Shown piece by piece: positions 407 to 64,000 of a stretch of DNA of 64,000 nt. The stretch's first letter is position 1; every line of letters starts with the position of its first letter. The notes below the pieces were generated by a model. That model was not told where the DNA came from, made no database searches, and was given only the letters and a program-made list of their open reading frames with translations. The stretch lies in the NCBI RefSeq assembly GCF_026571515.1, contig NW_026861498.1, positions 62,001 to 126,000 of the forward strand. Reading direction: 5' to 3'. Made by a program: the position numbers and the translations under genes. The stretch comes from Ruditapes philippinarum (taxonomy: Eukaryota).

Positions 407-3400
407 ATTGTGGAAATCCTTCACCGGCTTTTGGTTCTACAAATGACACAGACTTTATATATGGTACTGTGCTGGGAATTACATGCGCCACTGGATATGT
501 CATAACCGGAAGTCCATCTATTTCTTGCACGGCTAATGGAAGCTGGAGTGATAATGCCAATTGCGTACCTTTTGGTAAATACTTCGTGCTATTTACTTTT
601 TGTGAATACTTTTATACAAATAGACACATAAATGTTGGCATTCGAGATGGGAAGAAAGGGAGATCCCTCAAGTGCAATGAAATAAAAGAAGAAGTTGAAA
701 ACTGCAAAACTTTAAAATTTGATAACAAAGAAAGTGTAACATGCAGACTTTCCCATGCAGTGGCTAGAGCTGTTTTCAAACCATTGCACCTGAAATATTT
801 ATGTGTTGATCACGAATGACTCTATACACATATAACAAACCGGAGACGAAGTACAGGGCAATTTGTACGCCGAACTAAAGTAAATTCTTTATTAAGAATA
901 AGTTGTAAGCAACTTTGCATACAAAAACAACTACGATATTGTCATATGTTATATTACAATTTTGTTTTTAAGTAAAACGTTTTTGGTGATACGGTATAAA
1001 GTCTGAAAAAAATCATAACATGTGTCGTACGCATGTAGAAAAATGTTATCACACTCATTGGCATGTTTTCAGATTGTGGAAATCTTACTATTGTAAACGG
1101 CCAGTTTACTGCTTTGTCGGGGACAACATTTGGTCAAACAGCCAACCAGTCATGTGACGCTGGTTATGTCATTTCTGGTCAAGATGTAGCCATATGTACA
1201 ATGACCGGGTGGAATGCACCCGCTGTAGTATGTACTGTTGTCGGTATGCATAATGAATTCTCTAATTATAATGCAAAACGAAAAAAAAGAAATTCTGAAA
1301 GACGTGCTTAAAGGATTAGTTAGCCATTAGACAGAAACTAGGAAATATGAAAGCGATAAGCAACAGGCTTGTATCTAACATCTTAACAAATTAATATACT
1401 TTTGAATACTGATAATTGGAAGCTTGCTTGGTTTGTATTTGTTAGTTAGCTTTACTGCCGATTTTAGCACATGTTTGGTTTTATTTCTGCGGCGTCCGGT
1501 CCAACTTATCGACTATCTTGGACAACTTACTGGTAGTTACCAATTTCTCTACAAGCGACTGACTACATATCTCACGCAGTCTGGTCAGGATCCATGTATC
1601 AGTTTCTTTACTTGTTATGGAGTATGTACGCGAAAAACATGGATCCTGACATCCTGAACAGCATCTGAATCCATGCTGGTCGCAAACCCATTATGTTTGT
1701 TTCGTCATGGCGCGGCTCAATGTCATGACTGTTAGACTCAATGACCGAGTAGAATTCGCCTTGCCCGAAGATTAAACCAGCAACCTCTAGAATTCAAATA
1801 CCATGCTTTCCCTTTTGAGTTTCGTACGCAATCGTGTTCCCGAATGCAGTCTTCCAAATACTTTAAGCTTAGTTGAAATAATTAACTTCAGTAGGTATAT
1901 GTTGCATTTCGATTTATGCAAATTAGAGATATTCATTAAATACAATTATCATTCCTCTTCATGGTCGAAATCAAGTCAATCATATCATTTTGAAATATAC
2001 AACTATATGCGTGCATTATCTTTTTTTATTCAAGACTGTTTAATGCCCACTGTTGCAAATGGGACAATCGCCGACACACCAAATGGCACAACATTCAATG
2101 AAACGGCTATTATATCCTGCATTGATGGGTTTAAACTCAATGGAAGTTCAACTGTAACATGTGAGGATGACGGAAACTGGTCAACACTTCCAACATGCGG
2201 TATCAGAGGTACAAAAGATTCTGTGACATGATTTATTTTTCATTACTATTTAATTGATGATACATGACAAATTTTTAAGTAATCGCACTGTCTGGATCAT
2301 GTGATTTAGTGCATGCATCATGTAGTTTGCAAGGGTATTGATATAACTCATTACAGAATTGGAGCAGTTCCTCTAACCGCTTGCGGAAATCATGAATCGT
2401 TTTTATTCGCCGATTCTTATATTTTTCATTCATTATTCTATATAAATTGTCGTGAACAGACTGATTAGACATGTAAGGGTGCATTTTTGCGGGTGAAAAG
2501 GGGGAGATTATAGCATTTATTAATTCAAGCGCCTTGTCCGGTATATACCGGAGTTCGGTATTAAGCTAGGTACTCCATCACCAGTAAAGCTGGAACGTCG
2601 CGATACGACCTATACTGTGTCGATGTGACGTAAAACCCAAAACAAGACAAAACAAATTAAGTGAGGTGCTTCATCACCTTTTAGTCTCACTCGTTTGCAA
2701 ATGATAATTAATTGTTGTTGTTGTTTTTTGTTGTTGTTCTTTAGCTTTTTGTGTTTTTGTTTCTTTTTTGTTTTAATAATTTAAATCTTTTGTTAATTCG
2801 TCCTTTTAAACATGTGTAGGTTACGGAAAATATTTTCTATTGACTTCTATTGACTTCTCAGTTCAGTATTGTCTCCTTTGTTCGTAATAAGTTAACTCAT
2901 GGACTGTGTTTTTTGTTTTATTATATGTGACTTTTTCCCGGCACTTGTTTTCATTTTTTGTATATATAAAGATATTCTAGTCATTTTACTTATTTCCCAG
3001 TATCAGTCATAGTGTTATTACTTGACCTTTACTTATTATAACGCAAAAATATTATAATTATAAATACATACTGTCATTAAATGATAGATTGTGGTCCAAT
3101 CACTGTTGAAAATGGAAATGCAACAACTTCACATATCGGTGCAACACTAGTTGGAGATACGGCTGTGGTGTCGTGTAGTGTGGGATACATTGCTTCCAGG
3201 ATCTCAATATCGTGCCTTCCATCTGGACAGTGGGAAAACGTGACATGCAGGATAATAGGTTACTGTATTTTGTAACTGACATACTGTTTGTAAATGTCTA
3301 ATTAAACATATATAGCTTGATACATAATATTAAATATTGAAATTAAGAGTTATGCGTGTATGAAATTGCGAAATTAAGAATTGAAAACTTAAATGGTAAA

Positions 3401-6400
3401 ATTTTAAGTATTTTTAACAAAATTGACTGTTTAGATAAATAGCTTGAAAAGTTATATCTCTGCTGTTGCTAGCTATTGTACTCTGGAGTACTATCGCAAA
3501 AAGGGAAAAGTAACAGGATATTTACCTAATTGTTGAAATTATAGTTCTACATAATTGGCCGCGACCCGAATTAATACACATACATTTAACTCAGATCTTC
3601 GGCACGAAGTTGAGCTTGAGATATCAGATAAAGTTAACACTAAAAAAAAGTATACCTTGATGCCTAGTGTAAATGTAAGCACAATTAGGCAATCTGAGAC
3701 AACTTCGGCTCGACAACAAGAGTTGTCACTTTGGACTTCTCAGCTTGGCATCGCTACGACTTCCTATACAAAAGTTATCGGATTAAAATTGTACTGCTAC
3801 TACTAGTGGTATAGAGATTGCTAAAAATCAGTCGAGAATCCTCGTATTGTGTAAAATACAATCGGGTAGATATAAAGAAATCATCTTGGAGCTTGGTTAT
3901 ATAGTTGTTTAATTTGTTTTGGTATTTCTGTTAATTGGCTTGTCGCATATAATCGGATCATCTTTGGAAAAACTGCTTCCAAAACGACATAAGTTCCATA
4001 AGCATTAGAATTAATGTTTACTTTCAGATTGCGGAAATCCCCAAATTATTCTTCATGGATTTTTCTTACTTTTGACTGATACGGTTACAACATACGGTTC
4101 ATCAGCCAAAGTTGTTTGTGATGAAGGATATGGAAGTAAAAAACAGAATATATTATGTCAATCAAACGGGATGTGGGAGACAGTATCTTGTATTAAAACA
4201 GGTATTACATTTTTATTACGAACAAAAATTAATGTTGTTTGATACATGTACCTTGATAAGTGAAATATTTACGACATGGAATATTTCATTACATTACATG
4301 TTCAATGAATTATTTTGAAGATTTCCACAAAATAAAGAACCTTCTTTTTTGTGTTTGTATTGTAGGTATTTCTCTCAATTGATCGTGTGCAAATGAAAGA
4401 TGAAATAAATTATGGTATTTTAAGTATGAAATCTCTTACAAAATGGTTTAAGCATCATAATTGATATAGTATATAGATATAATTCAGAAGATATGTTTAC
4501 GCCATTTATTGTAGATGACCAAGGTGTCTCTACGACCATTCTTGTCTCCGTCTTAGTGAGTGCAGTGATCGCCGTCACAGCTGCCGTTGGTTTGGTAGCT
4601 TTATGGAACGTAATTCCTAAGAATCAAGTACCAAAGCCAACTTTTGAGGTACAAACTTGTTTTTATTATACACCAGATATACAAGGATATAATATGATTT
4701 TTTAGTGTTTATTTGCAAGTTTTATTGCAGCTGTTTAAAACATTGAAATTGTTGTTTTTTTCATATTATTAAAAAATGATGCAGAATCAAAGTTAAATTT
4801 AGGCACGTGAACATAATTGTTAAGGAAAGAGCATAGTTTTTCTTTTATTTCTGCCTGATGTATAAAGAATAATGATTAATGATATAAGTTTATGTTTTCG
4901 CGCTTATTAAAAGATACATCAATTAATAAAATTTACATACTTGTACTTATTGACGATAGTATTTAAAAATATCATATTGAAGGCCTTAACCATATGTTAC
5001 TAAGTCTTCATGAAACAGTGACCAATGACCTTCATGAGAAAAAACGATCCAATTATCTTTTATTATAAGAATAATGTAAATTAATAAAACTAGAAATGTG
5101 TCCATAGGACACGGGTGCCCCCACGGCGCCACTGTTATGTCAATCTTTTCACCAAGTCAAGGGAAATAACTCTACAAATACTGGATAAATCCACAAGCGA
5201 AACCCCAGGTGCAAATCTAAATATAATGAGCAACCTGCCCATAAGGTTTAATGACTATGTCAAATCCTTTTTGAGTAACTTGGGACACAAGTTGAAAATT
5301 GCAAAAAAAATCTTAGTGAAGGGCAATAACTCTAAAAATAGTAAATAAATCCAGACGAAAATACCTGGTGCACAACTGCATTTGCTGATCAATATTCCTG
5401 TAAAGTAACATGATTCTAGGTCAAATACTTTTTAGTTACGTGTGATACATGTTGAAAATTGCAAAATTTTACTAAGTCAAGGGCAATAACTCTAAAAATA
5501 CTAAAAATATCCACACGAAAATACACAGGTGCACAACTACACATTCTGAGCAACATTCCTGAAAAGTTTCATGACTCTAGGTCAAATACTTTTTGAGTTG
5601 CGTGTGACACAAGTTGAAAATTGCAAAATTTTACTAGGTCAAGGGCAATAACTCTGAAAATACTAAAAATATCCACACGAAAATACCAAGGTGCACAACT
5701 ACACATGCTGATCAACATTCCTGTAAAGTTTCATGACTGTAGGTCAAATACTTTTTGAGTAACATGCGACACAAGTTGAAAATTGCAAAATTTTACTAAG
5801 TCAAGGGCAATAACTCTGAAAATACTAAAATTATCCAGACAAAAATACCCAGGTGCACAACTACACATGCTGATCAACATTTCTGTAAAGTTTCATGACT
5901 CTAGGTCAAATACTTTTTGAGTTACGTGCGACACAAAAGTGAACGGACGGACGGAAGGACGGATAGACAGACGGACGGACAAGGGTAAATCTAAATGTAC
6001 GCCACTAACGTGGGGGCACAAAAAATAGATAACAGAACTTTATAACGGTATCTCAAATTGATAAGAAGCTCAAAATGACAATAAGCTTGCTTGATTTGTC
6101 ATTTATGACCCTCCCCACTCCTCAAATACCCGATTAATATTTATTTGTACAGTTATTTACAACGTCTGTGCAAGTACGTATGACATGGAACGTGTGTCCG
6201 CCCGGTATGACATTAAACACGTCCGCCCGTTATGTCATAGAACATGTTCAACCGCTTAGCTCAGTAGAGAGAGCACGGATTCGATCCCAGGGAAAAGAAT
6301 CAGATACGGAAATCATGAGGAAAAATAGTCGGTCAGTTGCAGATTAACTGGTAATTGCCAGTTAGTTATCCAGGAAGGCTGGTTCGATAGAATGCCCGTC

Positions 6401-6738
6401 TGGATATGAATATATAAAAACTTAGCGATAAAAAAAAGAAAACGTAATTACATTGTAAAATTGAGTAGAGAGAAAAGTTGATCTTCGTTGCCATACTGTT
6501 AGAAACGAAAACAAAATTGTCTGACATAGAAATATCTATTTTAGCATTTTTTATTTCTATATCACTTAAAGACTGAAACCACACTATATGAAATCTGTTT
6601 TCACAAACTATTTTTGTATTTCAGAAATCTGTTGAATCAGGGGTATCGCTGGTTTGGAACAGTAAAATTAATGCAATGAAAGAGGAAAACACTTATGATT
6701 TGAACTTCGATGGATATCATTACAATGGAAAACTTTGA
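407..6738 (+). CDS. Gene 1 (5'-partial): multi-Sushi/CCP type I membrane protein
   Basis: Exons read from AG/GT boundaries: CCP 407-574, 1073-1243, 2035-2208, 3088-3258, 4028-4201; TM 4515-4648; last exon 6625-6738 (KSVESGVSLVWNSKINAMKEENTYDLNFDGYHYNGKL*). Each CCP exon is phase 1-1 and has the DC..NG..C..G[YF]..C..G.W..C pattern. The spliced frame is open. Confidence 0.9.
1425..1815 (-). mobile_element. Degenerate tRNA-derived SINE with nested MITE fragment (1577-1720)
   Basis: TTGG/TTTG-type tail at the left and a tRNA-like head on the minus strand at about 1755-1815; the body is interrupted by a piece of the 7602 MITE family. Confidence 0.5.
2530..2656 (+). mobile_element. SINE 3' fragment
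   Basis: CACCAGTAAAGCTGGAACGTCGC..GACCTATACTGTGTCGATGTGACGTAAAACCC plus (CAAAA)n tail; related fragment at about 40690-40750. Confidence 0.55.
4515..4648 (+). CDS. Gene 1 transmembrane exon
   Basis: gtag|ATGACC...TTTGAG|gtacaa; encodes DDQGVSTTILVSVLVSAVIAVTAAVGLVALWNVIPKNQVPKPTFE, about 22 hydrophobic residues; phase 1-0. Confidence 0.88.
5088..6025 (-). mobile_element. Non-autonomous Helentron-associated (HINE-like) element with internal ~161-bp tandem array
   Basis: Terminal hairpin GTGTCC-ATA-GGACAC, subterminal IR GTGCCCCCACG/CGTGGGGGCAC, (GGAC/AGAC)n microsatellite 5944-5980, and about 5 repeats (AAGGGCAATAACTCT-type marker at about 5158, 5318, 5478, 5640, 5802). Confidence 0.8.
6250..6420 (+). 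mobile_element. tRNA-derived SINE remnant
   Basis: Pol III A-box-like TAGCTCAGTAG and B-box-like GATTCGATCC; the body resembles the reverse complement of 1500-1570. Confidence 0.5.
6625..6738 (+). CDS. Gene 1 terminal cytoplasmic exon
   Basis: tttgtatttcag| acceptor, 37 codons then TGA. Phase 0 matches the TM exon. Contains ENTYD, echoed by ENPYD in gene 2. Confidence 0.75.
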   Translation, partial: KSVESGVSLVWNSKINAMKEENTYDLNFDGYHYNGKL

Positions 6739-8219: not shown

Positions 8220-8280
8220 ATGGTTGTAAGAAAATGTCTTTTCGGAGTTTTAATTTGTTTGTGTTTCTATTTTGGAAAAG
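8220..8280 (+). CDS. Gene 2 signal-peptide exon
   Basis: ATG..MVVRKCLFGVLICLCFYFGK G|gtattc; basic n-region plus hydrophobic core; phase 1 joins the lectin-like exon. Confidence 0.8.
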
Positions 8281-11200
8281 GTATTCAGTAACAATTTATT
8301 TCCAGTATTTTTTAAATAATGATAAATTAATAAATATATATTTTGTAAGAAAATAGTTTCTGTTGTTATAAGTTTTTTTTTTAAAAAGAAAAAATGCCAA
8401 TATTGTATTCACTAAATATTAAAACTAGCACCAATTTTAATGTTGGAAATTAAGTACAATATTCTCAAACAAAAAAGAATTATGTTTTATAAAGTGTATT
8501 CGGAGATCGATTTTCTAATTTAAAATAAACTTAACAGGTTATATATATATTTGAGCCGCGTCACGACAAAACCAACATAATGGGTTTGCGATCAGCATGG
8601 ATCAGCGGATGCGCAGGCTGGTCAGAATTCATGCTGGTCGCAAACGCACTATGTTGGTTTTGTGATGTCTCTGCTAATTTATTTCTTATAATTATCTAAA
8701 TGTTGTTCCAGGACAAGTCGTCGTTTCATTCGAAATGTTACAGAATGAGACTTTTTGTGACCTCAAGAACGTGAATATTACTTGCGATAATAATGAGATG
8801 ATTGCCATCGAATCTCTGAACTTCTATTATCATCCAGATTGTAACAATACGTGTTGTAGCTTTAATTACAGTCATCATAATGTCGGAGCAAACAACAACG
8901 ATTTCCAGAATATTCGTCGTAATTGTTCAGGAAAATCTAGCTGTGCTGAAGACCTAAATGGAACTCGACAGTTTGGATCGATTGGTGAAGAATTACCTTC
9001 CTACGTGGTGCTGAAATATTACTGTATACCTAGTAAGACTAAGCAACTTTCTAGTAGTACTATAACATAATGATATATTTGACACTTATATTTTCAGGTT
9101 GAATTTTATGTAAATATTTTAAGCGTATCTTATACATACAGCCATAAATCAAAAGATTTATTTTCATTCTTATTGTGTATTTGTTTGAAACAAACATCTG
9201 CAATAAGGAGAGTGTGGTGTTTACTTCCTGTTATCGTCAGAAAAAAAACCTATTTTGAATTTTCCACCTCATTCTCCATAACATCCATAAGTAGTTTGTC
9301 ATTTTTTTTATTTAACATGTAGATAAAGAAGTAAAAAATTGTGCTGAAATATTACTGTATACCTAGTAAGACTAAGCAATTTTCTAGTAATAATATGATA
9401 TGATATCATTAACACTTATATTTTCAGGTTTAATTTCATGTAAATATTTTAAGCGTACCTTACATATACCTCAGGAAATCAAAATATTTTTTTATTCTTA
9501 TTGTGTATTTGTTTGAAACAAACATCTGAAATATAAAGAGTGTGATGTTAACTTTCTGTTATCGTCAGAAAATTTTGAATTATAAGTTTCTACCACATTC
9601 TCCATAACATCCATAAGTAGTTTGGTAAGAAATTCAGTCATTTTTTCACTCAACATGTATATAAAGATGTAAAACATTTTTTTTAAATTTCATTCCCCCA
9701 TCCCTAATGACAATTGAGAAGTAATTTCCGCGTCTATTATGTTTTATGAGCTTTTTGATTTTATGAAACCACAAAAAAATGTGTTTGCATGGTGAAATGC
9801 TTATGCTCAGTTAAGATAGCTAAGATCGGATAACAACCATGATTAAGGAAGATGTATTCATAGAATAACCGTTTTATTCTGAAGACCTAGACCACATGCT
9901 GAACGCTATAAAATTTCGTGCCACTGTTGATAACTGTATTACTGCATCAATGTTCCCACAATGCATAAATTGTAGTGACAGCGAGCTGTTATGAGAATGA
10001 TCATAATACCAACCCATTCCTTACACCGTTTCTAGGAATATGTTTCAAAAATGAAATTCCTTTATTTGTTTAGAAAACAGGACATCAACAATTTGCTCTG
10101 ATGGAGTGCTGGAGTCAACTGGACATCCGCTGTACTTAACAAACGAAAATTATCCATCGCTTGCTACTGGCAATAGCACTTGCTCATGTTCCATAGAAGT
10201 CAACTCTTGCGCATCGAATATAACTTTGTCCATGTTTGATGTAGACTTTAACAACCATCCAGCGACCTGTGAACAAAGTATTGAGCTTAAAAATGGAGCG
10301 GATGATGTGTTGAAACAGATTCTTTGCAATAGTTACAATAAGAACAACAGTATAATGGTCGAACAGATCACGTCACATTATCTGAAGATAGATTTTATTG
10401 ACAATTCCTTACAAGACCAAGGTCACTTTTTTGTTGGATTTGCAGGTACCATTACGGAATGATAATAACAATTTCAGCACTGATTCCATTTAAAGATATT
10501 TATAAGTTTAACAATATTTTATTACAATTTTGTAACATATAAAATGTGTATTATAATAGAAAACAAATGTTCATTAGTATAGTGCAAATGGATTGGCCTA
10601 AAGTTAGTACAACATTATCTTTATCCTTCCCCACTTAGTTCATAATATATAATGTCCGGATGCTTTTGTGAGAAAAACTTCAAATAACTAACTGAAAATG
10701 GAAGTGACAATGAAAAAATAAATATTATAATTTCGAAAAATTATATAGATTAAACTAATAGTTGAAGCACACACACGCGCACGCACGTGCTTACACACAA
10801 ACGCACACACAAAACTCTTGAGGAAAAGGATAAAAACACACAGTCAAATGTAATTTTAATTCACGAGAATTGTCGATATTATGACTTTGTGTTTAAAATT
10901 TCGTGTCGATAGACAATCTCCTTCAAATCCAGACACTTTACTTACAGCTTCAGCGTTTCAAAACATTGTTGTCTGCTTATTGCTATTTACAAACAAGTTT
11001 CATGAAAAACAAGCATACTATAATATTTACCGTGATTAAAATATGTGTACATGTATATGTTTATATTGTAAATAACACAATTTCATGTCATTTTAAAAAA
11101 CACTTAACTTATTTATTTCAGCATCTGAGGAAAATGTATCATTCAGTCTAAGATGTCCTTACCAGCGGGAAACAATCTGCCTTCGTAAGTACTTATCTTC

Positions 11201-14200
11201 AGGATAAATTTCCTCTGAAGTAGATAATAAGAAGTTTTCATATCTTGATGAAGCTATTAAGTTTTGAGTCTTGGTTAGAAGCTGTAAATTCGCGAGTGTA
11301 TGTTAAATATGAAATATTAATTCATTTACACATACAAAACTACAATTATGAACGCACTGTAAAAAGGTAAAAGGTTTAAAATAATATTATTGATTGTAAC
11401 AGTCATTTTTATATGCCGGAAAGAATTTCGGGCATATTATGATATATACCCCCTGAAGTCCGTCTGTCTGTCCGTCCGCACTCACAGGAGAGTAATTATG
11501 TGGCTAGAGGGACAATAGGTAACTGTTCTTTCTCTTTGATGTCATTCATTCCGTAATGCTTTTATGTGGCTATTTTCTTTTGTGTGGCTAAAAAGAACAA
11601 TAGAGAGAACAATAGAATAGCCACATAATTACTGTCCTGTGAGAACTTCCGTCCGTCCGTCCCTCCGTTAGCAATTTGGTTTCCGGAGCATAACTTAAGT
11701 TCCATTTGGCCCACATTATTCAAACTTCATAGGATGATTGTCCATATTGGGTAGAAGACCCCTATTGCTTTTGGGATCACAAAGTCAAAGGTCAAGGTCA
11801 CTATAAATTAATACTGAAATCAGTTTCCGGAGCATAACTTGAGTTCCATTTATCCCACAATATTCAAACTTCATAGGATGATTGTCCATATTGGGTGGAA
11901 GACCTCTATTTGTTTTGGAATTACAAGGTCAAGGTCACTATTACCTTTAAACTGAAAACAATTTCCGGAGCATAACTTAAGTTCCATTTGGCCCACAATA
12001 TTCAAACTTCATAGGATGATTGTCAATATTGGGTAGAAGACCCCTATTGATTTTGGTGTCACAAGGTGAAAGGTCAAGGTCACTATTACCTTACAACTGA
12101 AAACAGTTTCCGGAGCATAATTTAAGTTCCTTTTGTCTCAAAATATTCAAACTTTATAGGATGATTGTCCTTATTAGATATAAGACTCCTATTAATTTGG
12201 GGGTCACAAGGTCAAAGGTCAAGGTCAGTATTACCTTGAAACTGAAAACAGTTTCCGCTGAATAACTTAAGTATTAATCAACCTACAGCTGTAAAATTTT
12301 AAAGGATGAACAGTCCAATACATGACCTCTATTGATTTTAGGGTCATAAGGTCAAAGGTCAGGGTCACAATGATCTTTACATTGAAAATTTGTGGTTGCT
12401 GGAGAATAACTTAAGTTCCATTTGGCTCACAGTGTTCGAACTTCATAGGATGATTTTCAATATTTGGTATAAGACCCCTATAGATTTTGGGGTCACAATG
12501 CCAAAGGTCACTATTGCCTTAAAACTGAAAACAGTTTCCGCTGTAAATTTTAAAGGATGAACAACCATGTCCAATATTTCCATCCGTCGTAGCATTTTGA
12601 CTTACAAGATAACAACTTGATGGTGGTGCTTTAGAAACAGCAACTGTATTTATATGAAGGTTCTTCAGCTATAAAGGAGGATTGCTTTTTGAAGGAGGTA
12701 ATACTTAATTTAATTTTCCCATGTCTTACAAATGCTTCATCCTTACTAAAAAAACACTTTCAGGCATATAATGCTCCGCCTAGCGGTGCTCTTGTTAGAC
12801 TTGTTTGGCTTGACCTTATAGGGTGATACGTTCCGTGAACAGTGATCTCCATTTTGAACTTTTCTTTTTATTTATATTCTATTCTTGTATTTGTAAATTT
12901 CATGGAACGAAATTAATAGTTACTAAAACAGATATGACTCATACTTCAATCAAATCGAGCCTGCAACATTTACCACTTTGCCGTGTTTGGGCGTTCTAGA
13001 AGGATACTTTATTTTCCTTTTTTATACCTTGATTAGGTATTATTCATAAAGCATCGACTTATGAATTCCTTTAGTGAATATCATACCTTGACAATTACCT
13101 ATTACACTGATAAATATTTATATATATCGCAGAATGTGAAAACATGGTTGTCATTCCCCATGGAGATATGGTACTTCATGACGATGAGAACACAAGCGAA
13201 GGTGCCCTTGCTAATATAACTTGTGACGATGGATATGATTCAGACAAACCCACCATTGAATGCTTGAACAATGGAAAATGGGAAAATGCTACATGTCATC
13301 CAAAAGGTTTTTGTCATTTTACCTTGATAATTGTTATAGACCTTTAAACAATGCCTTTATTATTATCACAATCAAGCTTCTTTTTTGTTACACATATCTG
13401 AATGACTGCCCGCTGCCCTTGATTAGAATGATAAAAACCTACTGGTCTGTTCTTACACTATTAACATACTACGGCATTTGTGCCGTATTTAATTTCTAGT
13501 TAACATGGACGGTATCGTAAATATTTATTAATGTAATTACGTATTAAATATCGGGAAATATCATTGGTGCCATCCATGGATACGTCTATGAATTCTGGTA
13601 TGAAGTGTTTACCTTAGGACTGTCACTATTTAGTTTTTCCCTCCTATAGCAACATAATAGTTGGAGTTTAATCGGTCATCAAACGTGCTTATTACGCTTA
13701 TGCTTAACGTCATTCAAATTAAAGCGATGCTGCTGCTTTCGAATTGTAAAAATCTACAGTTATATATACGTTCCAGATTGTGGAAATGTATCAGCCATAT
13801 CAAATGGCAAGTATGAACTGAAAGACGAGGCCAATACAACATTTGGTGCTATGGCGACTGTAACATGTGTTAAAGGATATGAGTCGGACACTAATATAAT
13901 CACATGTTTAGATAATGGACAGTGGTCCGATTCCACGTGCACTGCTAAAGGTTAGTGGTTATTTGCTAAATTAAATAATAAATGTTCGACTACGTTACAA
14001 TTTATTGCAATGTGCTTTCTGTTACTTTGTTCTTGTGACCTTTGTTTTATTAAGTTAAAATGAATTGAACGATCGTGCACTGGTTAACAAATATATGTTT
14101 TACATTATAAAGTTTACAGTTACCTTTGCATGAAGATACCGATAGAGTGACCCATTTTAAAAGACGGTAGAAGATTTCTAACAAAAATCATATATTTCTT

Positions 14201-17200
14201 AATTTTAAGTTTCGGATTTAAAAATGAATTGCGGCATTTATAATTATAAAGTGTAAATCACCACACACGATGACAAACATGTCATACTCATTTGAAATAG
14301 ATGATTTTTTTTTAATTTCAAACATTAAGGAGTATAAAGGAAAACAATAATGACTTCTATCTGATTAGTTGATATAAAGTTGTGTATATTCAAGATTGTG
14401 GCAATGTCTCTGCGTTATCAAATGGCATATATGTGCTAGACGACGAAGGCAATACAACATTTGGCGCTGTTGCGATTGTGATATGTGACAAAGGATATGA
14501 ATCTGATAGTAATATCATCATGTGTTTAGATGTAGGTCAGTGGTCAAACTCGTCATGCACAGTCAATGGTAAGCAATTATTACGATCATTTTTGGAATTG
14601 CTGATAATATTATTATTCATATATAATTCAATATAACCTTTTACTTGCGATGACAGAATAAAACACGGCTACAATAAATTTGATCGTTCAACATTGATTA
14701 ATGCAAATATGCATGAAACTTTACAAACAAATGGTGATATGCCTTTAAAACGCAGTTGCTTGCGATGCTATTAGAAATGGCAAGCATGAGTGAAAAGTAA
14801 TAACTAAGAAAATCGTAAAGTTTTATTGCTTTTAAATGTTTATAACGCTTTATGCACCCGGCGATGGTGGCAATGAGAGCAATGTTACATTAAGAAGCAG
14901 TATAACAAAATTTTGGTTTAGGTTATATCACTTAAGTGATATGAAAACAACAAAAAAGTACAAACTTTATCGCCGCAGTTTGATCGTGTCTGTTCATAAA
15001 ATACTGCTTGTCTCGACCTATGCATGAATCAACAGACAATGGTATGCACATTTCTGTTTAAATGAACAAATCTGTGTTTGCATTTTCAAGATTGTGGAAA
15101 CATCTCTACTATATTACACGGCAAAATTGTACTGAAAGACAAGGCCAATACAACGTTCGGTGCCATGGCAACTGTGATATGTGACAAAGGATACGAATCC
15201 GTCAGAAACAATATCACATGTTTAGATAACGGACAGTGGTCTAGTGCATTATGTTCTGCCAAAGGTGAATACATTGACGAAAATGAAATGAATGTTTTCT
15301 AAATCAGAGACAAATATAATATTTCTTAAGAGGTTATAAAAAAATAGCGATAGCATCTAGTGTTTTCAAGTTATGGAACCGGAATTTATATACGTGACTT
15401 GGAAATGACATTAACAAATTAGATCTCCTTAATTTGTACTTAAAAAAGAACTAATGTCTGGCTTAAGTACAAGAAACATAGCTAAATTATATAGAAATAT
15501 TGATCAATAAACCATTCAGAGATTGTTCATACATTAAGTAGAATGATTGATTAAGTTAAAACCATTTTTTATCAAAATATTTACACAGCAACGCTTGATT
15601 TCATAAATGGATCATTTCTAAACGCTACAATATTTAATTTAACACTATTTTGCATGTCCTTATTATCATTCTACCGGAAATCAAGTTAAAACCTATTGTC
15701 ACATGTTTTCAAGATTGTGGTAGTGTCTCAGCTATATCGAATGGCAAGTATGTCTTGGAAAACGAGGACAATACAACTTTTGGTGCTATGGCAACTGTGA
15801 TATGTGACGAAGGATATGAGTCCGACAGTAACGCTATAACGTGTTTAGAAAATGGTCAGTGGTCGAGGGCATTATGCTCTGCCAAAGGTAAATAAAATGA
15901 CGAAAATGTAATGAATATTTTACTAAAACTATGACAGTGACAATTTCATCATGTCTTAATAAGCTATAATAAATCGCGCTTTAAGAGATAACATCTTTTA
16001 AGTTTATGAACCGGAATTTATATACGTGGCTTGGAAATGACGTGAACACACTAGATATCCTTGATTTGAATTAGGAAAAAATACTATTAGGTAAATTATT
16101 CGGAACTGTTTATATAGTAAATGAAATAATTGATTACGTTTAAACCATTTTGTAGCAAAATGTATACACATCAACAATATGTTTTCATAAATGGATAATT
16201 TCTAAACGCTAAAATATAAATACTATTTTGCATGTCCTTATAATCAATCTACCGGAAATCATGTTCAAAACTATTGGATTATTTATAATGTCACATGTTT
16301 TCAAGATTGTGGCAGTGTCTCAATTATATCAAATGGTAAGTATGTCTTGGAAAACGAGGACAATACAAGTGTATTCATACTATAAGCAGGTCAATAAACT
16401 ATTGTGAATTATTACAACGTTATATGTTTTCAAGATTGTGGCATTGTCCCAACTATATCAAATGGCCGATATACTCTGGAAGACGAGGGTGTAACAACAT
16501 TTGGTGCCATGGCAACTGTGATATGTGATGAGGGATATGAGTCCGACAGTAACGCTATCACGTGTTTAGAAAATGGTCAATGGTCGAGTGTAATATGTAC
16601 TGTCAAAGGTAAACACTATGTTTTATTTTCATTCGATATAGATTTCTTAATAAATGCTGTTTAAAGTTGAGAAAATATGTGCAAATGTTTGACTTGATGA
16701 ATGTCACAGACATAATTGCAGTTTTCTTTTCATATGAAATCAAACATACTTAATGGAACAAAAGTAAGTTTAAATTTATTATTCGGTCATTTATACATGA
16801 AATATACATGCACCACGTTTAACAAATTAATGTATAAAGTAAGGCAAATGTTATATATTATTGATATTATTAAATTCACTTGCAGTATTATTTACACTAT
16901 GTCGTCAATATGTTAATAAATGAATATCATAAAAATGATTATGTATACAAATATGTATATTACCGTAGTTCTTTTGATAAATGCATAAGAAAACGCAAAT
17001 ACTATCCGGAATCTGCTTCAAAATAGTTTGATTTGTTCACCATAAAAAAAACAACTGATAAAAGATTACGCAGCATAGGTTATTTTTCATATAATTTTAA
17101 TTCACATACTAGTGTATTAGCACGTCAATAAACTATTGTGAATTATTACAACGTTATATGTTTTCAAGATTGTGGCATTGTCCCAACTATATCAAATGGC

Positions 17201-20859: not shown

Positions 20860-21659
20860 GTCAGCAGTTGGGTTAAACTCAATAATAAATTAGCAATACA
20901 GGTAACCAGATATTAGACAAACAAAATAAAAATCTGGTTAGAGGCGGGAGCAGAATGTGCTGGGTACAAACAGAAAACAGTTGGTTATCATGTATTCCGT
21001 TGAAATGTCAAAAATTAAGATTTAGGAAAGACCTTAACAAATTTATGAAGAAATTTGTACAAAAAGCATGGAAAACAATTTTAGTACCCTTTTTGATTCA
21101 TAACTGTTACATATAATTGTTTATCTTATTTTATATTTTCATGAACTAATTTAAATGCTTCATTATTCATGTATGTTATGTGAAGAATGTTTTTAATTCG
21201 ACATGACAGTTCCTTCTCTTATATGCAATTTCTTAAACTTCTGATGTCTGTATAAATGATGTATGAATGGTAAAAATGAAACAATGTTTAAAGATTTAAT
21301 CGCAATTTCTAACTTTTCAACTTTGTAAAACTTTCCAACTTTATATTTCTTTCAGCTTACTGATCCAATATAAATTATCTTTATTCATGACAAAATGCTT
21401 TTGTTAACGCATTCCATGAAAACACCTCAAAATGTAGGCTTCCGAAAGAATTTTTGAGGAACCTAACAATAAATTATTAAAGTGTTACATACTATATCAT
21501 ATTAAATTTGATCCTCTACTGCTGTATTTCCTTCTTATTATACAAATACATAGTGTGTTTCGTCATGATGTTTTAAAAGGAGCTCCACTTTGGTTAAAAA
21601 TCTCCCCTACGAAGCATGAATTACAACAAAATGGAAATTTTGGACTTGATTCAATTGAG

Positions 21660-22330
21660 TGTGTACATGAGGGGTTATGACAAAGTACATCACCCTCACG
21701 CCCCCTAGCACCGGCTTGATAAATTTTCAATACTTAAAAGTGTTGGAATCAATAATCCCGAAGGAACAGAAAAATGTAGCATCACTGAAGTGATGTAAGG
21801 GGCAACATTTTACACCTGCCACACAGCGATTGACACTGCTGTTGTGAAGCATAAAAATCTGGACAAAGTGTGATTCCTCGGAAGCATTTATCACAACAAA
21901 TGACATCTTTGCATCGCATCTTTACATGAGGGATAATGACAAAGTACAACATCCCTTACGCCCCCTATTACTTGCTTAAGCGGTACTAAATTTTCAACAT
22001 TTTAAAGTGTTGGACTCAATGATCCCTAAATACCAGGATAAAATAACATCACTAAAGAGAAGTACGGGGTAACTTTTTACAGCTGCCATACAGCAATTGG
22101 CACTTCTGTTGTGAAGTATAAAAATCTGGACAAAGTGTGACTCCTCAGAAGCATTTATCACAATAAAATACCATGAAAAATGCAAGTTTACATTAGGGTC
22201 AATGACAAAGTGCAACATCGCTCAAGCCCCCCCCCCCATTAGCACCGGCTTGAGCGGTACCCAATTTTCAAAACTTAAAAGTGTTGGTATCAATAATGCC
22301 GAAGGACAAAAAATATAACAACACTGAGCC
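21660..22330 (+). repeat. ~260-bp tandem repeats of a dispersed family
   Basis: TACATGAGGG..TGACAAAGT..CCCCCTAGCACCGGCTTGA..AAAAGTGTTGG at about 21664, 21923 and 22189; another copy at 32527-32700; reverse-strand relatives at about 46330-46435, 54140-54330 and 62935-63060. Confidence 0.8.
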
Positions 22331-28800: not shown

Positions 28801-28944
28801 TTGCTAGAATAGAATGTTGTTAGTTTTGACTCATATATTTTATGTTTTATGATTGGTTAAAAGGTCATTTTTTGTGAAAAGCAATGCTATAATAATTAAG
28901 CATAATGAAATATTTTGTTTTATTATTGTTTGTCAATTTAACAG

Positions 28945-29944: not shown

Positions 29945-30189
29945 TTGACACTGTTATTAATCAAAAGCCATGTGTTTTGAAACTATTACATTATTTTGCG
30001 ACTTACAATTATCACATCAAATTGTTGTTTGAAAACTATTTCATCCAATAGTGATTTGAAACTATTACTTTATATATCAGTGATAATGTTTATAACCATA
30101 TATGAATCATTTGTAAATTAAGGAAGATTATATTCTTTTCATTCTGTTTGCATATCTTTTTACATCGAATGGTTGCCTTGAATCGAAGT

Positions 30190-31165: not shown

Positions 31166-31229
31166 ATGGGGATTCGTGTATTTATCATTTGCTTTGTGAA
31201 TTTGGTTTATCTCCTTAGTTTTAACAGAG
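31166..31229 (+). CDS. Gene 3 signal-peptide exon
   Basis: MGIRVFIICFVNLVYLLSFNR then G|gtgagg; phase 1. Confidence 0.82.
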
Positions 31230-55200: not shown

Positions 55201-58200
55201 ATAAGCAAGTTTGCACACTGCTGCATGCAACGCATCATTTTACATTATATTTAAAGGGATTAAATATAATATGTTCTTTCTTGTTAGGATATGACTGTAG
55301 TACATTCAGTTATTCATGTACAATTTATTCTGAATTAAAATAACATATTCAAAATTCACAACTTGTTAAATAATACTACACTAACATATATCTTTTATTT
55401 AAGATTGTGGGGACACAGGGTCGATTTTAAATGGGAGCATAACCTTAGATGTGCCTGGCAAAACAATATATCAATCTACAGCATCTATATCATGTGAAAC
55501 TGGTTTCAACCGGTCAACAGCAACAATTTCTTGTCAGTCAAATGGCGACTGGCAAGAAGCTTTTTGCATAATCAAAGGTGATAAACAAAAATTTCTTTTG
55601 TCAAAGTAAATTATTTTATTGTAGAGTCCATTGATGAAATTGTAATGTATGTGCTATATCATTTCGGTTTGCGGTAAATTTAATTAACACTCCTTATTGA
55701 AAACTGAAATAGTAAATGAGAACTAACTTTGAGTTTTTGATAATGAGTATATGATGCATTCGTTTGTTAGCTGATTTATTTACGATTGTTAAGCATCTTT
55801 TACGCATTTACGCAAAAGTTTTGCATTTTTTCCATGAAAATTAATAACACAATTCATTAGATGTACATTAATATATAACTTTTGTCCTTGAATAAATGTT
55901 ATGATGAATGCATAGCTGACAATACTATAATTAATCTTACACAAGCACATGACGAGAGTGTGATTCTTGTCAAAGTAAATTTTGTATGAACAAAAATCAT
56001 TGATTCATTTACAAGAATTGTTTTAACAATATATAGATTGTGGTGTCCCAAATAAAATAAACAACGGCTCCGTTACTGAAGATGTCGCCGGTAAAACATT
56101 TTATCTTTCCACTGCAAAAGTGTCATGTGACACGGGGTTTGACTCGTCAACAGATTCAATAATGTGTCAGGCAGACGGTACCTGGCAAGAAGCTTCTTGT
56201 AAAATTAGAGGTGTGTTCCCAACTGTATTAGTTTATCTTTAAATGGATAAGTAGTATACGGAAATCGTTTATAATAAAAAAAACAAGTTCAATTAATGTA
56301 CAACATTACTGACTGATATATGATAGAAAATGTACAAAAATTAACTTGAAATAAAAGAAAATTTTAAAAAACGCATTTCACACGTTTGATACAGTAAGAG
56401 AAAATATATACACTAAAATGTAACAACAGATGTGCTGCCTGAATAAACATACCAGTTAGTTATATGTATTTGAATCACTTCGTATTAAATCCATTCATAT
56501 ATGTTTCCAATTAGACTGTGGGGAATTAAATACCACTATAGAACATGGGACAATTACTATCAACGAGGATGGAAAGACAACATTTCGTTCTACTGCATCA
56601 GTAACTTGTGATATTGGTTTCTATCCAACGATTGATACAATAAAATGTCAATCAGATGGCTCGTGGGAAATTGTTAACTGTGTCAAAACAGGTATTTGTC
56701 ATTATTGTGATAAAATTTATACTTTTATTTATGGTCATATTAAATTAAAAATGCTGAATTTCAATTCCAAAATACCGAAATTGAAATACTAACAATAAAC
56801 AAGGGGTGAGCGGTGACCAAGTGGTCAATGTGTCTGATTCTAAACCCTGGGACCATGAGTTCGAGCAAAATTCGGGTCACGGACATGTTTTTTCATAGGA
56901 CACCAACAGTTAGTTCTAGACAGCTGACCCGACAGTGATTAGTATAAATTGCAATTAGTTGCAAAAATACTAGTTTCGAAACCGAGCTCAAGTAAATATG
57001 TTTCAGCTAAAAGTAAAGAACTTTGTCAGACTGCAAACTGACATGGTTCTATACTGGTGGTAATATTCAAGAGAAAGAGTGATCCCTCTTTCATTTTCGG
57101 TTCCAACAGCTTTAGTGTTAAAACAATTGGATAAGGAGTCCTGTAAATAATTCATCGTGCAACACTGTCTAAGGTTAGGAGAAAATAAAATCGTCTAAAG
57201 TTACATAATAACTAGGATTTGTTTATGAAACGTACAATGTATACCTACTAGGTAGATATACAAACGCATGTCGACATACAATGCATTTATTATCACTTGT
57301 TGGATTAAAGCTGAGAACGAACGTAGTATATGAAGTTGATTTGCATATTACATTTCTGTTTAAATTCATGAAAATGAATAAAGAATTTGATTCATGTATC
57401 ACTAAATGTAACATGCTTTCTATAGATATTAAAGTATATTGTCATTTTTACAAGTATCCGTAATCGACCACCTTTTAAAAGTTAAATAATTTTATGATTC
57501 TTAAAATAGTATTTGTTAAAATATATCTTGTTGCTGATGCCTTTATATAGAGACAAAGATAACAAAGATAGGTAATTTCCTAGCCAGTTATGATATAAAG
57601 ATGCTTGCTAAGCTAAAACCTATGGCAAGTAGAAATTACTAACTAGATATCAAATCATCCCCCATAATACGTTTCCTGAAAGCTTATACATTCATTCTTT
57701 ACCTAAGATAAAAATATTTTTAGGTCCCATTTAAATAAATGATACATCTTTTTTTCTGAATGGAACTACTTAATTATTAACTTTTGTTACATTACTACGA
57801 ATATGATGAAAAACTGGCTCAGTGGGTATTTTCTGCTACGATATTTTAGGTGAAAGGCATACTGGCATGCGAGCAGTTCCCGTACAAAAATCGTAGTTAC
57901 TTAAACATTATTTTTTATTACGCGCACTCACCAAAATTTGAATGTTACACATCAATATTCGGCTCGTCACACAAATCATGGAAATTCCATCATGTTCAAA
58001 ACATAGAATAACCCTTAGTTATGAGGCCTCATATGGGGTACCGAAATTATCAATTATTTTGTATGAAGAGAAGTAGTTCCCGTACATAAAATTTAATCCA
58101 TTATAATTATACAATTTTATCATATCGGACCTATTTTTCATTTATAATTGTTGAACAGACCATTTACTAAGAGATAAATAGATGTTATTCAGGAAATAGA

Positions 58201-61200: not shown

Positions 61201-64000
61201 AAAGGTAACTAGCAATGAAAAGTAACGGGTATCACAAAAGTTTTGTTCCATTTTTTAAAGATACTTATAAGCTTATTTGGTAAGCTGATGCAAGTTATGT
61301 GTTTGAATTAGGCGTATCCGGCAACCTAATAGAAACTAATTGTTTGAACAAAGTAGATTGATTATAATTAAGACTACTACCGGGTAAAATAATTCTCCAT
61401 ACCGATTCCTTACAGAGTATATTCATTAAGTGATATGAACGCTAGTTTCGAATGTATACAGGTATAATTAATATATATGTACAGCGAAATACATTTAGAC
61501 CAATCACAATAAGCTAAGCATTTATTTCGTTCCAAAATCGACGATGAATATGAATTATTTATAATAATTTGTAATTGTATGTAAATTAATATACAGATTG
61601 CGGAGCTCCCAACGTAATAAACAATGGTGAAGTTAAGCTTGATATTCCTGGAAAATCGACTTATCTTTCCAATGCCACAGTAACTTGTGACCCCGGTTTC
61701 AATACATCGACCGACAGTGTAATATGTCAAGCTAACGGTTTGTGGCAAGATACCGCTTGCATTATTATTGGTAACTATTTACTGAAACTCATGTTTAAAG
61801 AGTAATGCTTTATTTTTCTTTGAATAACTGGCTGGCGGATTTCTATTTCTATTGTTTTGTTTGTTATTTAGATATATTATGAGTATAAAATTGTAGCTTT
61901 GAAACATGTTTTGTAATACATACATAGATGCTTATTACCATCCCTGGCCGCCATTTTGGGAGTCATTCCCAATAATAATATTCTTAAGATACGATAAAAA
62001 TCTCTCATTATAATGCTATCATCTTCATGAAAAATGACAAAGATTCTTTACATATTGGTGCTATAATAATATTTGGATACATATGTATAAAAGATTATGA
62101 CAATTCATGTAAAGTAGCTTTTTTCATCTTAATGTCAATTATATTAATGTATAGAATATTGACCCTAAAACAAAGGCTGTCACTTTGGGCAAGGAAGTTA
62201 AATATTGCAGAAATGATATCCTTAAATTTTAAATATCCTTTCTCTGCAACTTTTGACAATTGGATTAAAATGTAACTGAGCATGATTATGTATTATTAAT
62301 AGTATCCAAAATTGTTACGAATGCTAATAAAGAAAACATGACATTTTTGTAACATCTTATTGTTACAGTAGGTTTTTCTTATGAAACATTTATGTAAACG
62401 TGGTACCTATATTTTAGAGTGCGGGCTACCTGAAACATTGGCAAATGGAACAATATCTTTAAATGACCCAGGTAAATCATCCTACTCCTCTAATGCAACA
62501 GTAACATGTGACATAGGATTCGATGCATCTACAAATGAAATATCATGCGAAGCTAGTGGTAAATGGCAAGAAGCTATTTGCATAATCAAAGGTAACACGC
62601 ATTGGAAAATGTTTCACTTTAAAAAACATAACGATTTAAATATAAGTAATATCAAATACAACACATTATAAATATAATCATCAAGAAATACTAAGAATAA
62701 CGTTCTATGACCGTTACAATTGTCAAAAGTAGTATTTATATCAACATATATCGCTACTATAAATCAATTGTAAAACGCCTTTAAAGTTAACATTTGAAAA
62801 CGCCTAAATGGTGGGTAAGAATTACTCATGTTGTGATTACAGTTGTAAGATTCAGATTCAGATTGGAGGTTCTTGAAGTGTCCATTATAAGCGCTATTTG
62901 AAATAATATGCCTATGTTTCTATACTCATCTATAAGTGTTAAATTCTGCTTAAGCAGGTGCTAGCGTTCATGAATATTAACTTGCATTCACAATACCTGT
63001 TCATGACTACACTACGCTCAATCAAACCGAGACTGCAACCTTTCCATATTTGTCACATTTGTGGTAATGTGCCTACCTCTTAAGAATTTCATTTTTTATC
63101 TAAATTATCAGACATTTGTTGAAGTAATAAAACTATATATTATGATATCATACATATTTTAATTACATGATAACTAAGGGAAAGTTAATTTGAGTGTCTA
63201 ATTGATTTAGACTGTGGAAATCTGCCTGAACTTGAGAATGGCGACTTTGTGTTGAGTGATGAAAACAAAACGACTTATGGTTCGGGCGCGGTTGTTGAAT
63301 GTCTCACGGGTTTTGTGCCATCTGCCGCGTCGATATCTTGCCAGTCGAATGGTAAATGGGAAGATGCCTCGTGTACAAAGGAAGGTAAAATGCTTTTAAA
63401 TTGTTTATCACAAATGTATCCTCATATTCTTGTGGGTTGTTTTAAGAAATAACCTTAACAATGACAATCCCATTATGTATTGGAATTCTATAGTTTATCT
63501 GACAAAAACGAAAGTGACCAAACGTTTTTAGCAGGCTTAGAACCAAAGACGCACGTACATTTGTTGTAAATAAAAAAAGTTTATTTCAAACTGTTTCTTC
63601 TTTTTGCAGCCTTAAAAAAATATTTTGGTTATATCTGTACACTATAAATAAACATTTTTCACTTCTTAAAAGTATATATGCTATGATAAAATTGCACGTG
63701 GCAATGCCTACGTGCATAAACAGAACCTAATAGTAATACAAAATTGCTTTATGTTTGCTGAGTAATTAACTGAATATATCTTGGAGCTGATGTATCACAG
63801 TAACAAATGTATTTGACCGGGTAATATTCATGTTCATACTGAGTAATACATTATTGATGATAGTCTTAGACTGTGGATCTCTCCCAAATCTCGATAACGG
63901 AAAACTCACATTGACAACAGCTGGCAAGACGCAAAAAGGAGCAACCGCAAGGGTGTCGTGCAACAATGGATATACCAAAACAGATGATATAATTACTTGT
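31166..64000 (+). CDS. Gene 3 (3'-partial): SP, SUEL-like, CUB-like, CCP, split CCP with nested LDLa, then at least 32 more CCPs
   Basis: Exons 31166-31229, 32114-32446, 33139-33507, 33839-33898, 35649-35822, 36190-36303, 37103-37213, 37444-37518, 37805-37900, then CCP exons starting at 38556, 38878, 39444, 40364, 40992, 41377, 42086, 42608, 47312, 47887, 48476, 48874, 49742, 50166, 50742, 51722, 52551, 53468, 54408, 54936, 55404, 56037, 56515, 59011, 59366, 59960, 60477, 61031, 61597, 62418, 63211, 63870 (runs off the window). About 6897 coding nt, all introns phase 1. Confidence 0.9.
32114..32446 (+). CDS. Gene 3 SUEL-type lectin-like domain exon
   Basis: CDLK..ITC..IVIQSFYFYYHPTCEATCC..VRRLCSGRTDC..FG..PSYVVIYHYCVP; clear paralogue of 8712-9032. 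Confidence 0.78.
33139..33507 (+). CDS. Gene 3 CUB-like domain exon
   Basis: PIYLTSNDYP..CTCSVEV..CEQNIDF..IDC..TNYIKIDF..GFFFLGF; paralogue of 10074-10445. Confidence 0.75.
33839..33898 (+). CDS. Gene 3 Cys linker exon
   Basis: ttcag|TGACTG..ATGG|gtaagt; TEETAFKLSCSFEEQTVCM. Confidence 0.82.
34475..34787. mobile_element. Small TIR element (MITE)
   Basis: Perfect 16-bp IR AGGATTGGAGCAGTAC / GTACTGCTCCAATCCT. Confidence 0.65.
36190..36303 (+). CDS. Gene 3 N-terminal half of CCP2 (Cys1, Cys2)
   Basis: caacag|ACTGCG..AAAG|gtaagg; DCGSPFNISNGIITLVTDGNTTYGAKANVICDEGFQVK. Confidence 0.88.
36385..37065 (+). repeat. Degenerate ~21/42-bp minisatellite (CTACGCTATCATCATTTG..)
   Basis: Many TACGC(T/G)ATCATCATTTG units fill the intron that splits CCP2. 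Confidence 0.85.
37103..37213 (+). CDS. Gene 3 LDL-receptor class A (LDLa) module exon
   Basis: aatag|GAAATTGC..TGTT|gtaaga; [36 protein letters not shown] has six Cys and the acidic D..DC.D..DE Ca-binding cluster. Confidence 0.92.
37444..37518 (+). CDS. Gene 3 four-Cys truncated LDLa-like exon
   Basis: tttcag|CGGATC..ACAG|gtatgt; DQTNCAEGQKLCGKSCVDSNYTCT; 75 nt, phase 1-1. Confidence 0.8.
37805..37900 (+). CDS. Gene 3 acidic spacer plus C-terminal half of CCP2 (Cys3, Trp, Cys4)
   Basis: tttcag|ATAGTG..AAAG|gttttt; DSGTDEEETEFSNGIISCLVIGRWEIVQCVPK. Confidence 0.85.
38556..64000 (+). CDS. Gene 3 uninterrupted array of at least 32 single-exon CCP modules
   Basis: Exons of 165-177 nt with consensus DCG.P..I.NG.I.L...G.TTYLS.ATVSCD.GFD.S.DSISCQA.G.WQ.ASC.IK. 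Confidence 0.92.
43101..47213. mobile_element. ~4.1-kb non-coding DNA-transposon remnant with ~140-bp imperfect TIRs and nested repeats
   Basis: Left arm CTAACGGCATTTTTTAGTACAAGCAGGTAG..CTACCACGGCTGTA..AGTCCTTGACCT..AAAATGGCCGCCATTG is mirrored at 47071-47210. The right end reads ..TAGACTC|TTAA (GAG/CTC terminus plus TTAA, Sola-like). No transposase ORF visible. Confidence 0.8.
47221..47280 (+). repeat. Perfect 30-bp tandem duplication
   Basis: AGGGTCTTTTCTGAAAATCAAACCCGTCTA x2. Confidence 0.95.
51500..51645. repeat. Imperfect palindrome (hairpin element remnant)
   Basis: TGACTA..TTATGATGTGATATTCACCGGCAGAA..TTTTGCCGGTTAATATCACA..TCATAA..TAGTCA. Confidence 0.6.
56803..57005 (+). mobile_element. 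tRNA-derived SINE remnant
   Basis: GGTGACCAAGTGG (A box) and GAGTTCGAGC (B box) followed by a non-tRNA body; no complete cloverleaf. Confidence 0.55.
57862..58673. mobile_element. 812-bp Tc1/mariner-type MITE
   Basis: Perfect 25-bp TIR CTGGCATGCGAGCAGTTCCCGTACA / TGTACGGGAACTGCTCGCATGCCAG, flanked by TA on both sides (57860-61, 58674-75). Confidence 0.88.
59330..62030 (+). repeat. Intragenic segmental duplication of CCP exons and introns
   Basis: 59330-60420 aligns with 60440-62030: exon 59366 with 60477, exon 59960 with 61597; exon 61031 has no counterpart in the first copy. Confidence 0.9.

Follow-up and report, generated by a model that had tools for sequence, protein, structure and literature searches.

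We analyzed a window of 64,000 nucleotides from Ruditapes philippinarum (NCBI RefSeq assembly GCF_026571515.1, contig NW_026861498.1, hereafter C9985; the window is C9985:62001-126000) together with the rest of this 189-kb contig, and searched the 1.41-Gb assembly for the N-terminal head described below. Contig C9985 carries three tandem paralogous genes, all on the + strand, which share a common plan: a signal peptide, a domain with a divergent SUEL (rhamnose-binding lectin) fold, a domain predicted to have a divergent CUB fold, a linker with two cysteines, an array of complement control protein (CCP, or Sushi) modules, a transmembrane (TM) segment and a tail. There are 32 CCPs in gene 1, 10 in gene 2 and 35 in gene 3. 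Gene 2 lies entirely within the window and has 16 exons. Exons at paralogous loci of the assembly match R. philippinarum RefSeq proteins letter for letter across runs of 101-123 residues. Coordinates are collected in Table 1; here and in the text they are window positions unless marked as contig positions.

A preliminary description, made from the letters of the window alone, had proposed that genes 2 and 3 share a four-exon head followed by 10 versus at least 34 CCPs. Both parts were borne out: the SUEL-like exons of the two genes are 48% identical (E-value 3e-36) and the CUB-like exons 40% identical (E-value 3e-19), the linker and signal-peptide exons correspond, and in gene 3 the window stops within a 34th module, with a 35th beyond it. 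That description had also suggested looking beyond both edges of the window, and we found a head of this kind for gene 1, 40 kb before the window, as well as a TM exon and a tail for gene 3 shortly after the window end.

Table 1. Exons and modules of the three genes on contig C9985 (window positions unless marked contig).
Feature	Position	Strand	Basis and remarks
Gene 1 signal-peptide ATG	contig 19353	+	upstream of window
Gene 1 SUEL-like exon	contig 21393-21740	+	head search
Gene 1 CUB-like exon	contig 22231-22617	+	head search
Gene 1, 27 full CCP exons	contig 26155-61702	+	upstream of window; CCP hidden Markov model (HMM)
Gene 1, last five CCP exons	407-574, 1073-1243, 2035-2199, 3088-3258, 4028-4201	+	HMM; phase-1 AG/GT; lengths multiple of 3
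Gene 1 TM exon (candidate)	4488-4648	+	phase 1 in; donor 4609, 4627 or 4648, all phase 0; splice candidates only
Gene 1 candidate last exon	6625-6738	+	37 codons + stop, Tyr-rich; polypyrimidine tract, AG acceptor, phase 0; inferred
Gene 2 exon 1, start codon and signal peptide	8220-8280	+	20 codons + 1 nt, phase-1 GT donor, hydrophobic N-terminus
Gene 2 exon 2, SUEL-like domain, 8 Cys	8712-9032	+	profile, AlphaFold2 (AF2) model, splice sites
Gene 2 exon 3, predicted CUB-fold domain	10074-10445	+	acceptor 10074 and donor 10445 supported by putative RNA contigs
Gene 2 exon 4, 21-residue linker, two Cys	11122-11184	+	phase 1 both sides; homologous to gene 3 linker exon
Gene 2 CCP1-5 (exons 5-9)	13133-13306, 13777-13950, 14395-14568, 15091-15264, 15714-15887	+	HMM, Pfam Sushi, splice sites
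Gene 2 CCP6-10 (exons 10-14)	16435-16608, 17169-17342, 17578-17748, 18208-18387, 19132-19305	+	HMM, Pfam Sushi, splice sites
Gene 2 exon 15, TM	19471-19616	+	phase 1 in, phase 0 out; 23 hydrophobic residues then K-K-R-Q-N-R
Gene 2 exon 16, acidic cytoplasmic tail, ~237 residues	20146-20859	+	AG acceptor to stop 20857-20859; internal repeat, Tyr motifs
Gene 3 exon 1, start codon and signal peptide	31166-31229	+	phase-1 donor
Gene 3 SUEL-like exon	32114-32446	+	acceptor 32114 or 32120; 48% identical to gene 2 exon
Gene 3 CUB-like exon	33139-33507	+	40-44% identical to gene 2 exon; splice candidates
Gene 3 two-Cys linker exon	33839-33898	+	homology, splice candidates
Gene 3 CCP array	35649-64000	+	33 modules whole in window (one split); HMM and splice sites
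Gene 3 34th CCP	63870-64043	+	cut by window end (63870-64000 inside)
Gene 3 35th CCP	contig 126709-126882	+	beyond window
Gene 3 TM exon	contig 127704-127850	+	beyond window, from 1.7 kb past its end
Gene 3 tail exon	contig 128542-128871	+	41% identical over 118 amino acids (aa) to Mercenaria P0007, E-value 4e-23

The head and the array of gene 2 are spliced into one transcript. Four GT..AG introns are spliced out in an assembled contig from run X2 (record 13, 851 nt, depth 93), which runs from the CUB exon through the linker and CCP1 to CCP2 and CCP3 (joints 10442(+3) to 11119(+3), 11184 to 13133, 13306/13777 and 13950/14395), run X1, which comes from a different study, shows two of the same joints, and the observed joints coincide with those predicted by the phase-1 rule. 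The possibility raised in the preliminary description, that head and CCP arrays are found in separate mRNAs, is thus contradicted for gene 2 by spliced contigs (putative RNA) in which they are joined. Using the sum of the exon lengths (similarity searches were run exon by exon), the 16 exons total 3420 nt, stay in frame and encode 1139 aa. In genes 2 and 3 the last nucleotide of the signal-peptide exon is the first base of a Gly codon, and joining exon 1 of gene 2 on gives a 'G-Q' junction as in Ruditapes and Mercenaria family proteins; a contig assembled over the SUEL exon has 14 unmatched letters upstream of 8710, which fits a splice there. The linker exons have 20-21 codons, and all head exon boundaries are phase 1. 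The tail exon of gene 2 had no Pfam match. We note that very high-copy repeats occupy 8546-8663 (intron 1, just upstream of the SUEL exon) and 11300-12900 (intron 4, including a 145-bp tandem array with six copies at 11679-12540), with contig depths of 1e4-1e5 in all runs, and that gene 1 is preceded by a related element (contig 15038-15515).

The predicted structure of gene 3 is supported by a RefSeq model from Mercenaria (P0007, 2594 aa, 34 Sushi matches), which has the same head, the same tail and an LDLa exon nested inside CCP2. In gene 3, CCP2 is split into an N-terminal half (~36190-36308) and a C-terminal half (37795-37899), which are separated by an LDLa exon (37102-37212) and a small Cys module (37431-37502). 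Mercenaria P0007 and P0008 show the same nested order, with an LDLa exon that is 68% identical; the arrangement is thus conserved and forms part of mRNA models. A public fragment (P0003) is near-identical to the SUEL-like exon of gene 3. The intron that splits CCP2 also holds 21/42-bp repeats (36663-37049), and a 23-bp minisatellite with 11.5 copies lies upstream of the gene (30185-30447). Between genes 2 and 3 there is a degraded retrotransposon with broken frames (26051-28537), which includes a CCHC zinc-knuckle open reading frame (26628-26888) and a weak RVT_1 match (27118-27510, E-value 5e-4). Scans of the window for tRNAs and Rfam families found no RNA genes.

The first CCP exon of gene 1 in the window begins at 407, exactly where the preliminary description had placed it. 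That description also had genes 1 and 2 ending in homologous TM and tyrosine-tail exons with the same intron phases. The TM part stands, with a weak similarity (37% over 32 aa, E-value 1e-4 in a small search) and with phase 1 in and phase 0 out possible in both; the predicted gene 1 exon has a hydrophobic stretch of ~23 residues and is 35% identical to Mercenaria TM regions. As to the tails, Tyr motifs are present in both and the BLAST similarity is not significant; their homology is unconfirmed because tail searches gave no match between them. When the tails of genes 1, 2 and 3 were compared with one another, no significant similarity was found, and searches against Mercenaria, Mactra and Ruditapes returned only the gene 3 match to P0007 (Table 1) and a weak resemblance of the candidate last exon of gene 1 to the C-terminus of the same, gene-3-type protein (E-value 0.03). 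Gene 1 also contains two partial degenerate CCP matches (contig 33479-33568 and 55837-55938), which are probably relic exons from array turnover. The 3' part of the gene holds a tandem repeat (5147-5936, a 162-bp unit with 4.9 copies).

The first head domain has a SUEL fold, on which profile and structure comparisons agree. A profile built from 20 family members found the rhamnose lectin SUL-I (E-value 2e-12) and the latrophilin lectin domain (2e-6) among PDB sequences; 10 of its 11 PDB matches are SUEL-type, and the 11th is the lectin-type C-terminal domain of a rice beta-galactosidase (E-value 0.2). Pfam SUEL_Lectin matches weakly in 11 of the 20 members (best E-value 2e-4) and has no match in the SUEL-like exon of gene 3, and a phmmer search of 1.84 billion representatives reached genuine multi-domain SUEL lectins at 4e-6. 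The AF2 model of the gene 2 SUEL exon has a predicted local distance difference test score (pLDDT) of 87; using this model in a structure search of 48,161 chains, the top eight were all SUEL-type (Z 7.1-8.9, next 4.9), and Foldseek assigned it to the SUEL type with probability 1.0. The three C9985 genes keep eight cysteines, but a CC doublet is present and the cysteine at the DPC position is absent. Other subfamilies (C10417, C6119, C1607 and C4585) keep an extra Cys pair, one of them beside the canonical DPC position, and this pair is lost in the three C9985 genes and their closest relatives.

The second head domain is predicted to have the CUB beta-sandwich fold. Pfam places it at the border: the gene 2 exon scores 22.3 bits for CUB (PF00431; cut-off 21.4), and the gene 3 exon has no Pfam match. 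Structural evidence comes from a natural minimal paralogue, P0009, in which the same head is joined to one CCP and a TM helix (AF2 pLDDT 81): its residues 130-253 align to the CUBs of Kremen, C1s, PCPE-1, MASP and neuropilin with Z 10-12 (root-mean-square deviation 2.3-3.2 A over 107-115 residues), and all 50 of the 50 best entries are CUB-domain proteins. The CUB-like exons of the window are 37-46% identical to those of the paralogues. At window position 10265 the X2 contig is without 3 bases (depth 93/93), and it differs at several other exon positions; this amounts to an in-frame one-codon allele of the CUB-like exon, and the head is thus polymorphic between individuals.

CCPs were found by regular expression and then with an HMM built from the window's own modules. 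On the 189-kb contig this HMM gave 79 matches in three blocks, exclusively on the + strand, and three exons scored 34.7, 31.3 and 29.4 bits against Pfam Sushi (PF00084; cut-off 20.7). All 76 full CCPs have four cysteines and a conserved Trp, occupy one exon each and keep open frames, with an AG located two nucleotides 5' of the first Cys codon and a phase-1 GT a few codons past the fourth Cys; exon length is a multiple of 3 in every case and exactly 174 nt in 59. As another explanation of the CCP matches, scattered pseudo-exons were considered and ruled out, given the open frames, splice sites and spliced contigs and the purifying selection described below.

Each array grew independently, by duplication of exon-intron units under purifying selection. 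Mean identity among CCPs is 0.57, 0.51 and 0.48 within the genes and 0.34-0.37 between them, and 71 of the 76 have their nearest neighbor in the same gene. Recent duplicates share 96-98% protein identity and lie 1.1-4.8 kb apart, so units of one to several exons are being copied. Among duplicated CCP exons dN/dS is 0.25-0.55 and never >1, and the exons are 88-98% identical as compared to 61-89% for the flanking introns. The arrays contain about twice as many N-glycosylation sequons as expected from shuffling.

Across the assembly we found 13 matches to the SUEL-like head and 14 to the CUB-like exon, of which some copies may be haplotigs; with the exception of the copy on C14294, each SUEL copy is followed at a distance of 0.3-3.6 kb by a CUB-like exon of the same contig and strand. 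In the 1.84-billion-protein library there were 21 matches, and the family members come from Mercenaria, Ruditapes or Mactra or are unnamed fragments, so the head is restricted to venerid and mactrid clams as far as these sequence collections reach; a length-limited protein search with P0009 returned Ruditapes proteins only. The head tree has three subfamilies, and the C9985 genes group with a Mercenaria cluster on one chromosome (support 87/88), so the subfamily is older than the split of the two venerids. For stalk lengths outside C9985, the public data consist of Ruditapes and Mercenaria proteins. Pfam finds Sushi and one LDLa in P0007 and P0008, and Sushi alone in P0001 (Mercenaria XP_045195609.2, 852 aa). 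The latter has SUEL-like domains at 11-144 and 238-368, CCPs after each and no CUB, and is either a real two-headed variant or two neighboring genes merged in annotation.

The earlier proposal of a lineage-specific tandem family holds in its structural part: the three paralogues have 10, 32 and 35 CCPs and different tails, and the head is limited to few clam genera. Likewise, no named protein with the order SUEL, CUB, several CCPs and TM had been recognized at the outset, and the relatives we found are named 'SVEP1-like' or 'uncharacterized', with no characterized orthologue among them. SVEP1 (polydom) is similar in its many Sushi repeats, but its VWA, EGF, pentraxin and HYR domains were not found by Pfam in the Mercenaria relatives or in the scanned window exons; the name comes from automatic best-hit labeling and does not denote orthology. 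A full-text literature search returned no description of a clam SUEL-CUB-CCP family, and the receptor family, restricted to clams, is previously undescribed in the literature searched. A 2026 quantitative trait locus study of Perkinsus olseni resistance in the Manila clam lists an 'SVEP1-like' gene, a possible member of this family, among its candidates (PMC13504780).

Among known systems, the selectins (E-, P- and L-) are similar in that a lectin-type head at the N-terminus of a type I protein is followed by a small Cys-rich module, a stalk of 2-9 CCPs, a TM segment and a tail, and in having tandemly clustered genes whose stalk length varies among paralogues. However, selectins have a C-type lectin domain and an EGF module whereas the clam head exons match SUEL and CUB only, the clam stalks reach 35 CCPs, the sequence relationship is limited to the CCPs, and sugar binding by the clam head is putative; the resemblance is an analogy rather than membership. 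CR1/CD35 and other regulator of complement activation (RCA) proteins also have long membrane-anchored CCP rods (30 in CR1), mostly with one module per exon, in which unequal crossing-over of multi-module blocks expands the arrays and gives length variants. Their CCPs bind C3b/C4b and carry no non-CCP head, unlike the clam rods, which are capped by the conserved SUEL-CUB pair. In CSMD1-3, SEZ6 and C1r/C1s/MASP a CUB directly adjoins CCPs, as in the clam proteins: Foldseek with the whole model gave MAP-1 and the CUB2-CCP1-CCP2 part of C1s as best matches, and the nearest named clusters in the protein atlas include SEZ6 and CUB/Sushi proteins. The clam proteins differ in having a single, very divergent CUB with a SUEL domain in front, in having no alternating CUB-Sushi units and in lacking a protease domain. 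By structure and by profile, the first head domain is matched best by SUL-I, CSL3 and the lectin domain of latrophilin (ADGRL), and in latrophilin a SUEL domain likewise sits at the far tip of a surface receptor, where it binds the protein teneurin; the clam domain differs from all three in scoring under the Pfam cut-off, in its replaced motifs and in its altered Cys pattern.

We propose, with a probability of roughly 55%, that the three genes encode recognition or adhesion receptors with a SUEL-CUB tip on a CCP rod, a function suggested by the architecture. The SUEL-CUB pair would form the ligand-binding tip, and the glycosylated CCP rod would set its distance from the cell, from a few nm to >100 nm (a CCP is ~4 nm long), while the differing tails may connect to distinct partners inside the cell. 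Since other residues stand in for the canonical sugar-contact motifs, the ligand may well be a protein, as it is for the lectin domain of latrophilin, and not a sugar.

Several observations weigh against this proposal. The SUEL exon of gene 2 scores 19 bits against Pfam SUEL_Lectin (PF02140), with the full profile covered, where the cut-off is 31.4. Sugar-binding SUEL lectins are characterized by YGR, DPC and KYL motifs and a canonical eight-cysteine pattern; in the HMMER alignment to SUL-I and latrophilin these three motif positions hold other residues, with Ser in place of the Lys of KYL in most family members, and since the motifs are replaced, 'lectin' is here a label for the fold and the activity is putative. 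The CUB-like family profile found no solved CUB among PDB sequences. The models of genes 1 and 3 are predicted from homology and splice signals. The read and contig alignment covered the gene 2 region 8500-14499, the X1 and X2 runs are presumed to be RNA, and in two raw RNA-seq runs the coverage of gene 2 exons is at most 3x. Finally, diverged CCPs under purifying selection fit specific binding roles as well as those of a mere spacer.

The main alternative is that the CCP array is the working part and the SUEL-CUB pair an accessory or assembly module, which would make the proteins membrane complement-regulator-like or multi-ligand scaffolds (compare CR1/CD35, CSMD and SVEP1). The arrays grow by multi-exon blocks (pairs 3.1-4.8 kb apart), in the manner of CR1's long homologous repeats, the divergence of the CCPs (~50% identity) together with purifying selection suggests module-specific constraints, and the whole assembly contains at least 2235 Sushi candidates. 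However, the head is the part that is kept across paralogues with 1 to 35 CCPs, and the single-CCP protein P0009 would lose most of an array function; we regard this alternative as doubtful, although it has a real chance of being right. A role in gamete or larval cell-cell recognition rather than immunity, with fast-evolving array length and tails, seems improbable to us. SUEL lectins, CUB spermadhesins and sushi proteins recur on egg and sperm surfaces, and the family is lineage-restricted and duplicates often, but a CCP dN/dS below 1 is unlike that of rapidly diversifying gamete proteins. A reading of the arrays as graveyards of decaying or mis-joined exons, with the long models as artefacts, is very improbable: gene 1 does have two degenerate CCP matches, there are long introns in gene 1 (5-9 kb) and gene 3 (one of ~4.5 kb), and errors of assembly and annotation arise easily in long tandem arrays, but the 76 full modules are uniformly open with correct phase-1 splice sites and evolve under purifying selection, the gene 2 contigs (putative RNA) are spliced, and the Mercenaria orthologue model repeats the long array with the same nested LDLa and tail.

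Under the proposal of a recognition or adhesion receptor, in-frame skipping of CCP exons could further tune the rod length, an idea that we raise because the isoform models of the Mercenaria orthologue of gene 3 suggest it. Among 13 RefSeq isoforms, which are predicted models of a repetitive gene, 11 differ mutually by 59, 118, 177 or 295 aa, i.e. by 1, 2, 3 or 5 whole CCPs at various positions, and the other two differ at an end. That stalk length is both regulated and diversifying, through CCP exon skipping and through copy-number polymorphism by unequal crossing-over, is a speculative extension which we consider unlikely. If true, each cell or clam would have its own set of receptor 'reaches' with the same head, and an innate receptor would be diversified by length, combining length alleles of the CR1 type with cassette choice of the Dscam type.

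Bivalves depend on recognition molecules that are encoded in the germline, and their lineage-specific expansions of mosaic receptors are well known. The genes on C9985 and their relatives provide a natural series in which the same two-domain head stands on 1, 10, 32 or 35 CCPs with different tails, and with such a series of stalk lengths under a constant head the effect of receptor reach could be studied. The family is also a textbook case of array growth via symmetric phase-1 exons, and its description corrects the misleading automatic name 'SVEP1-like' in two commercially important clams.

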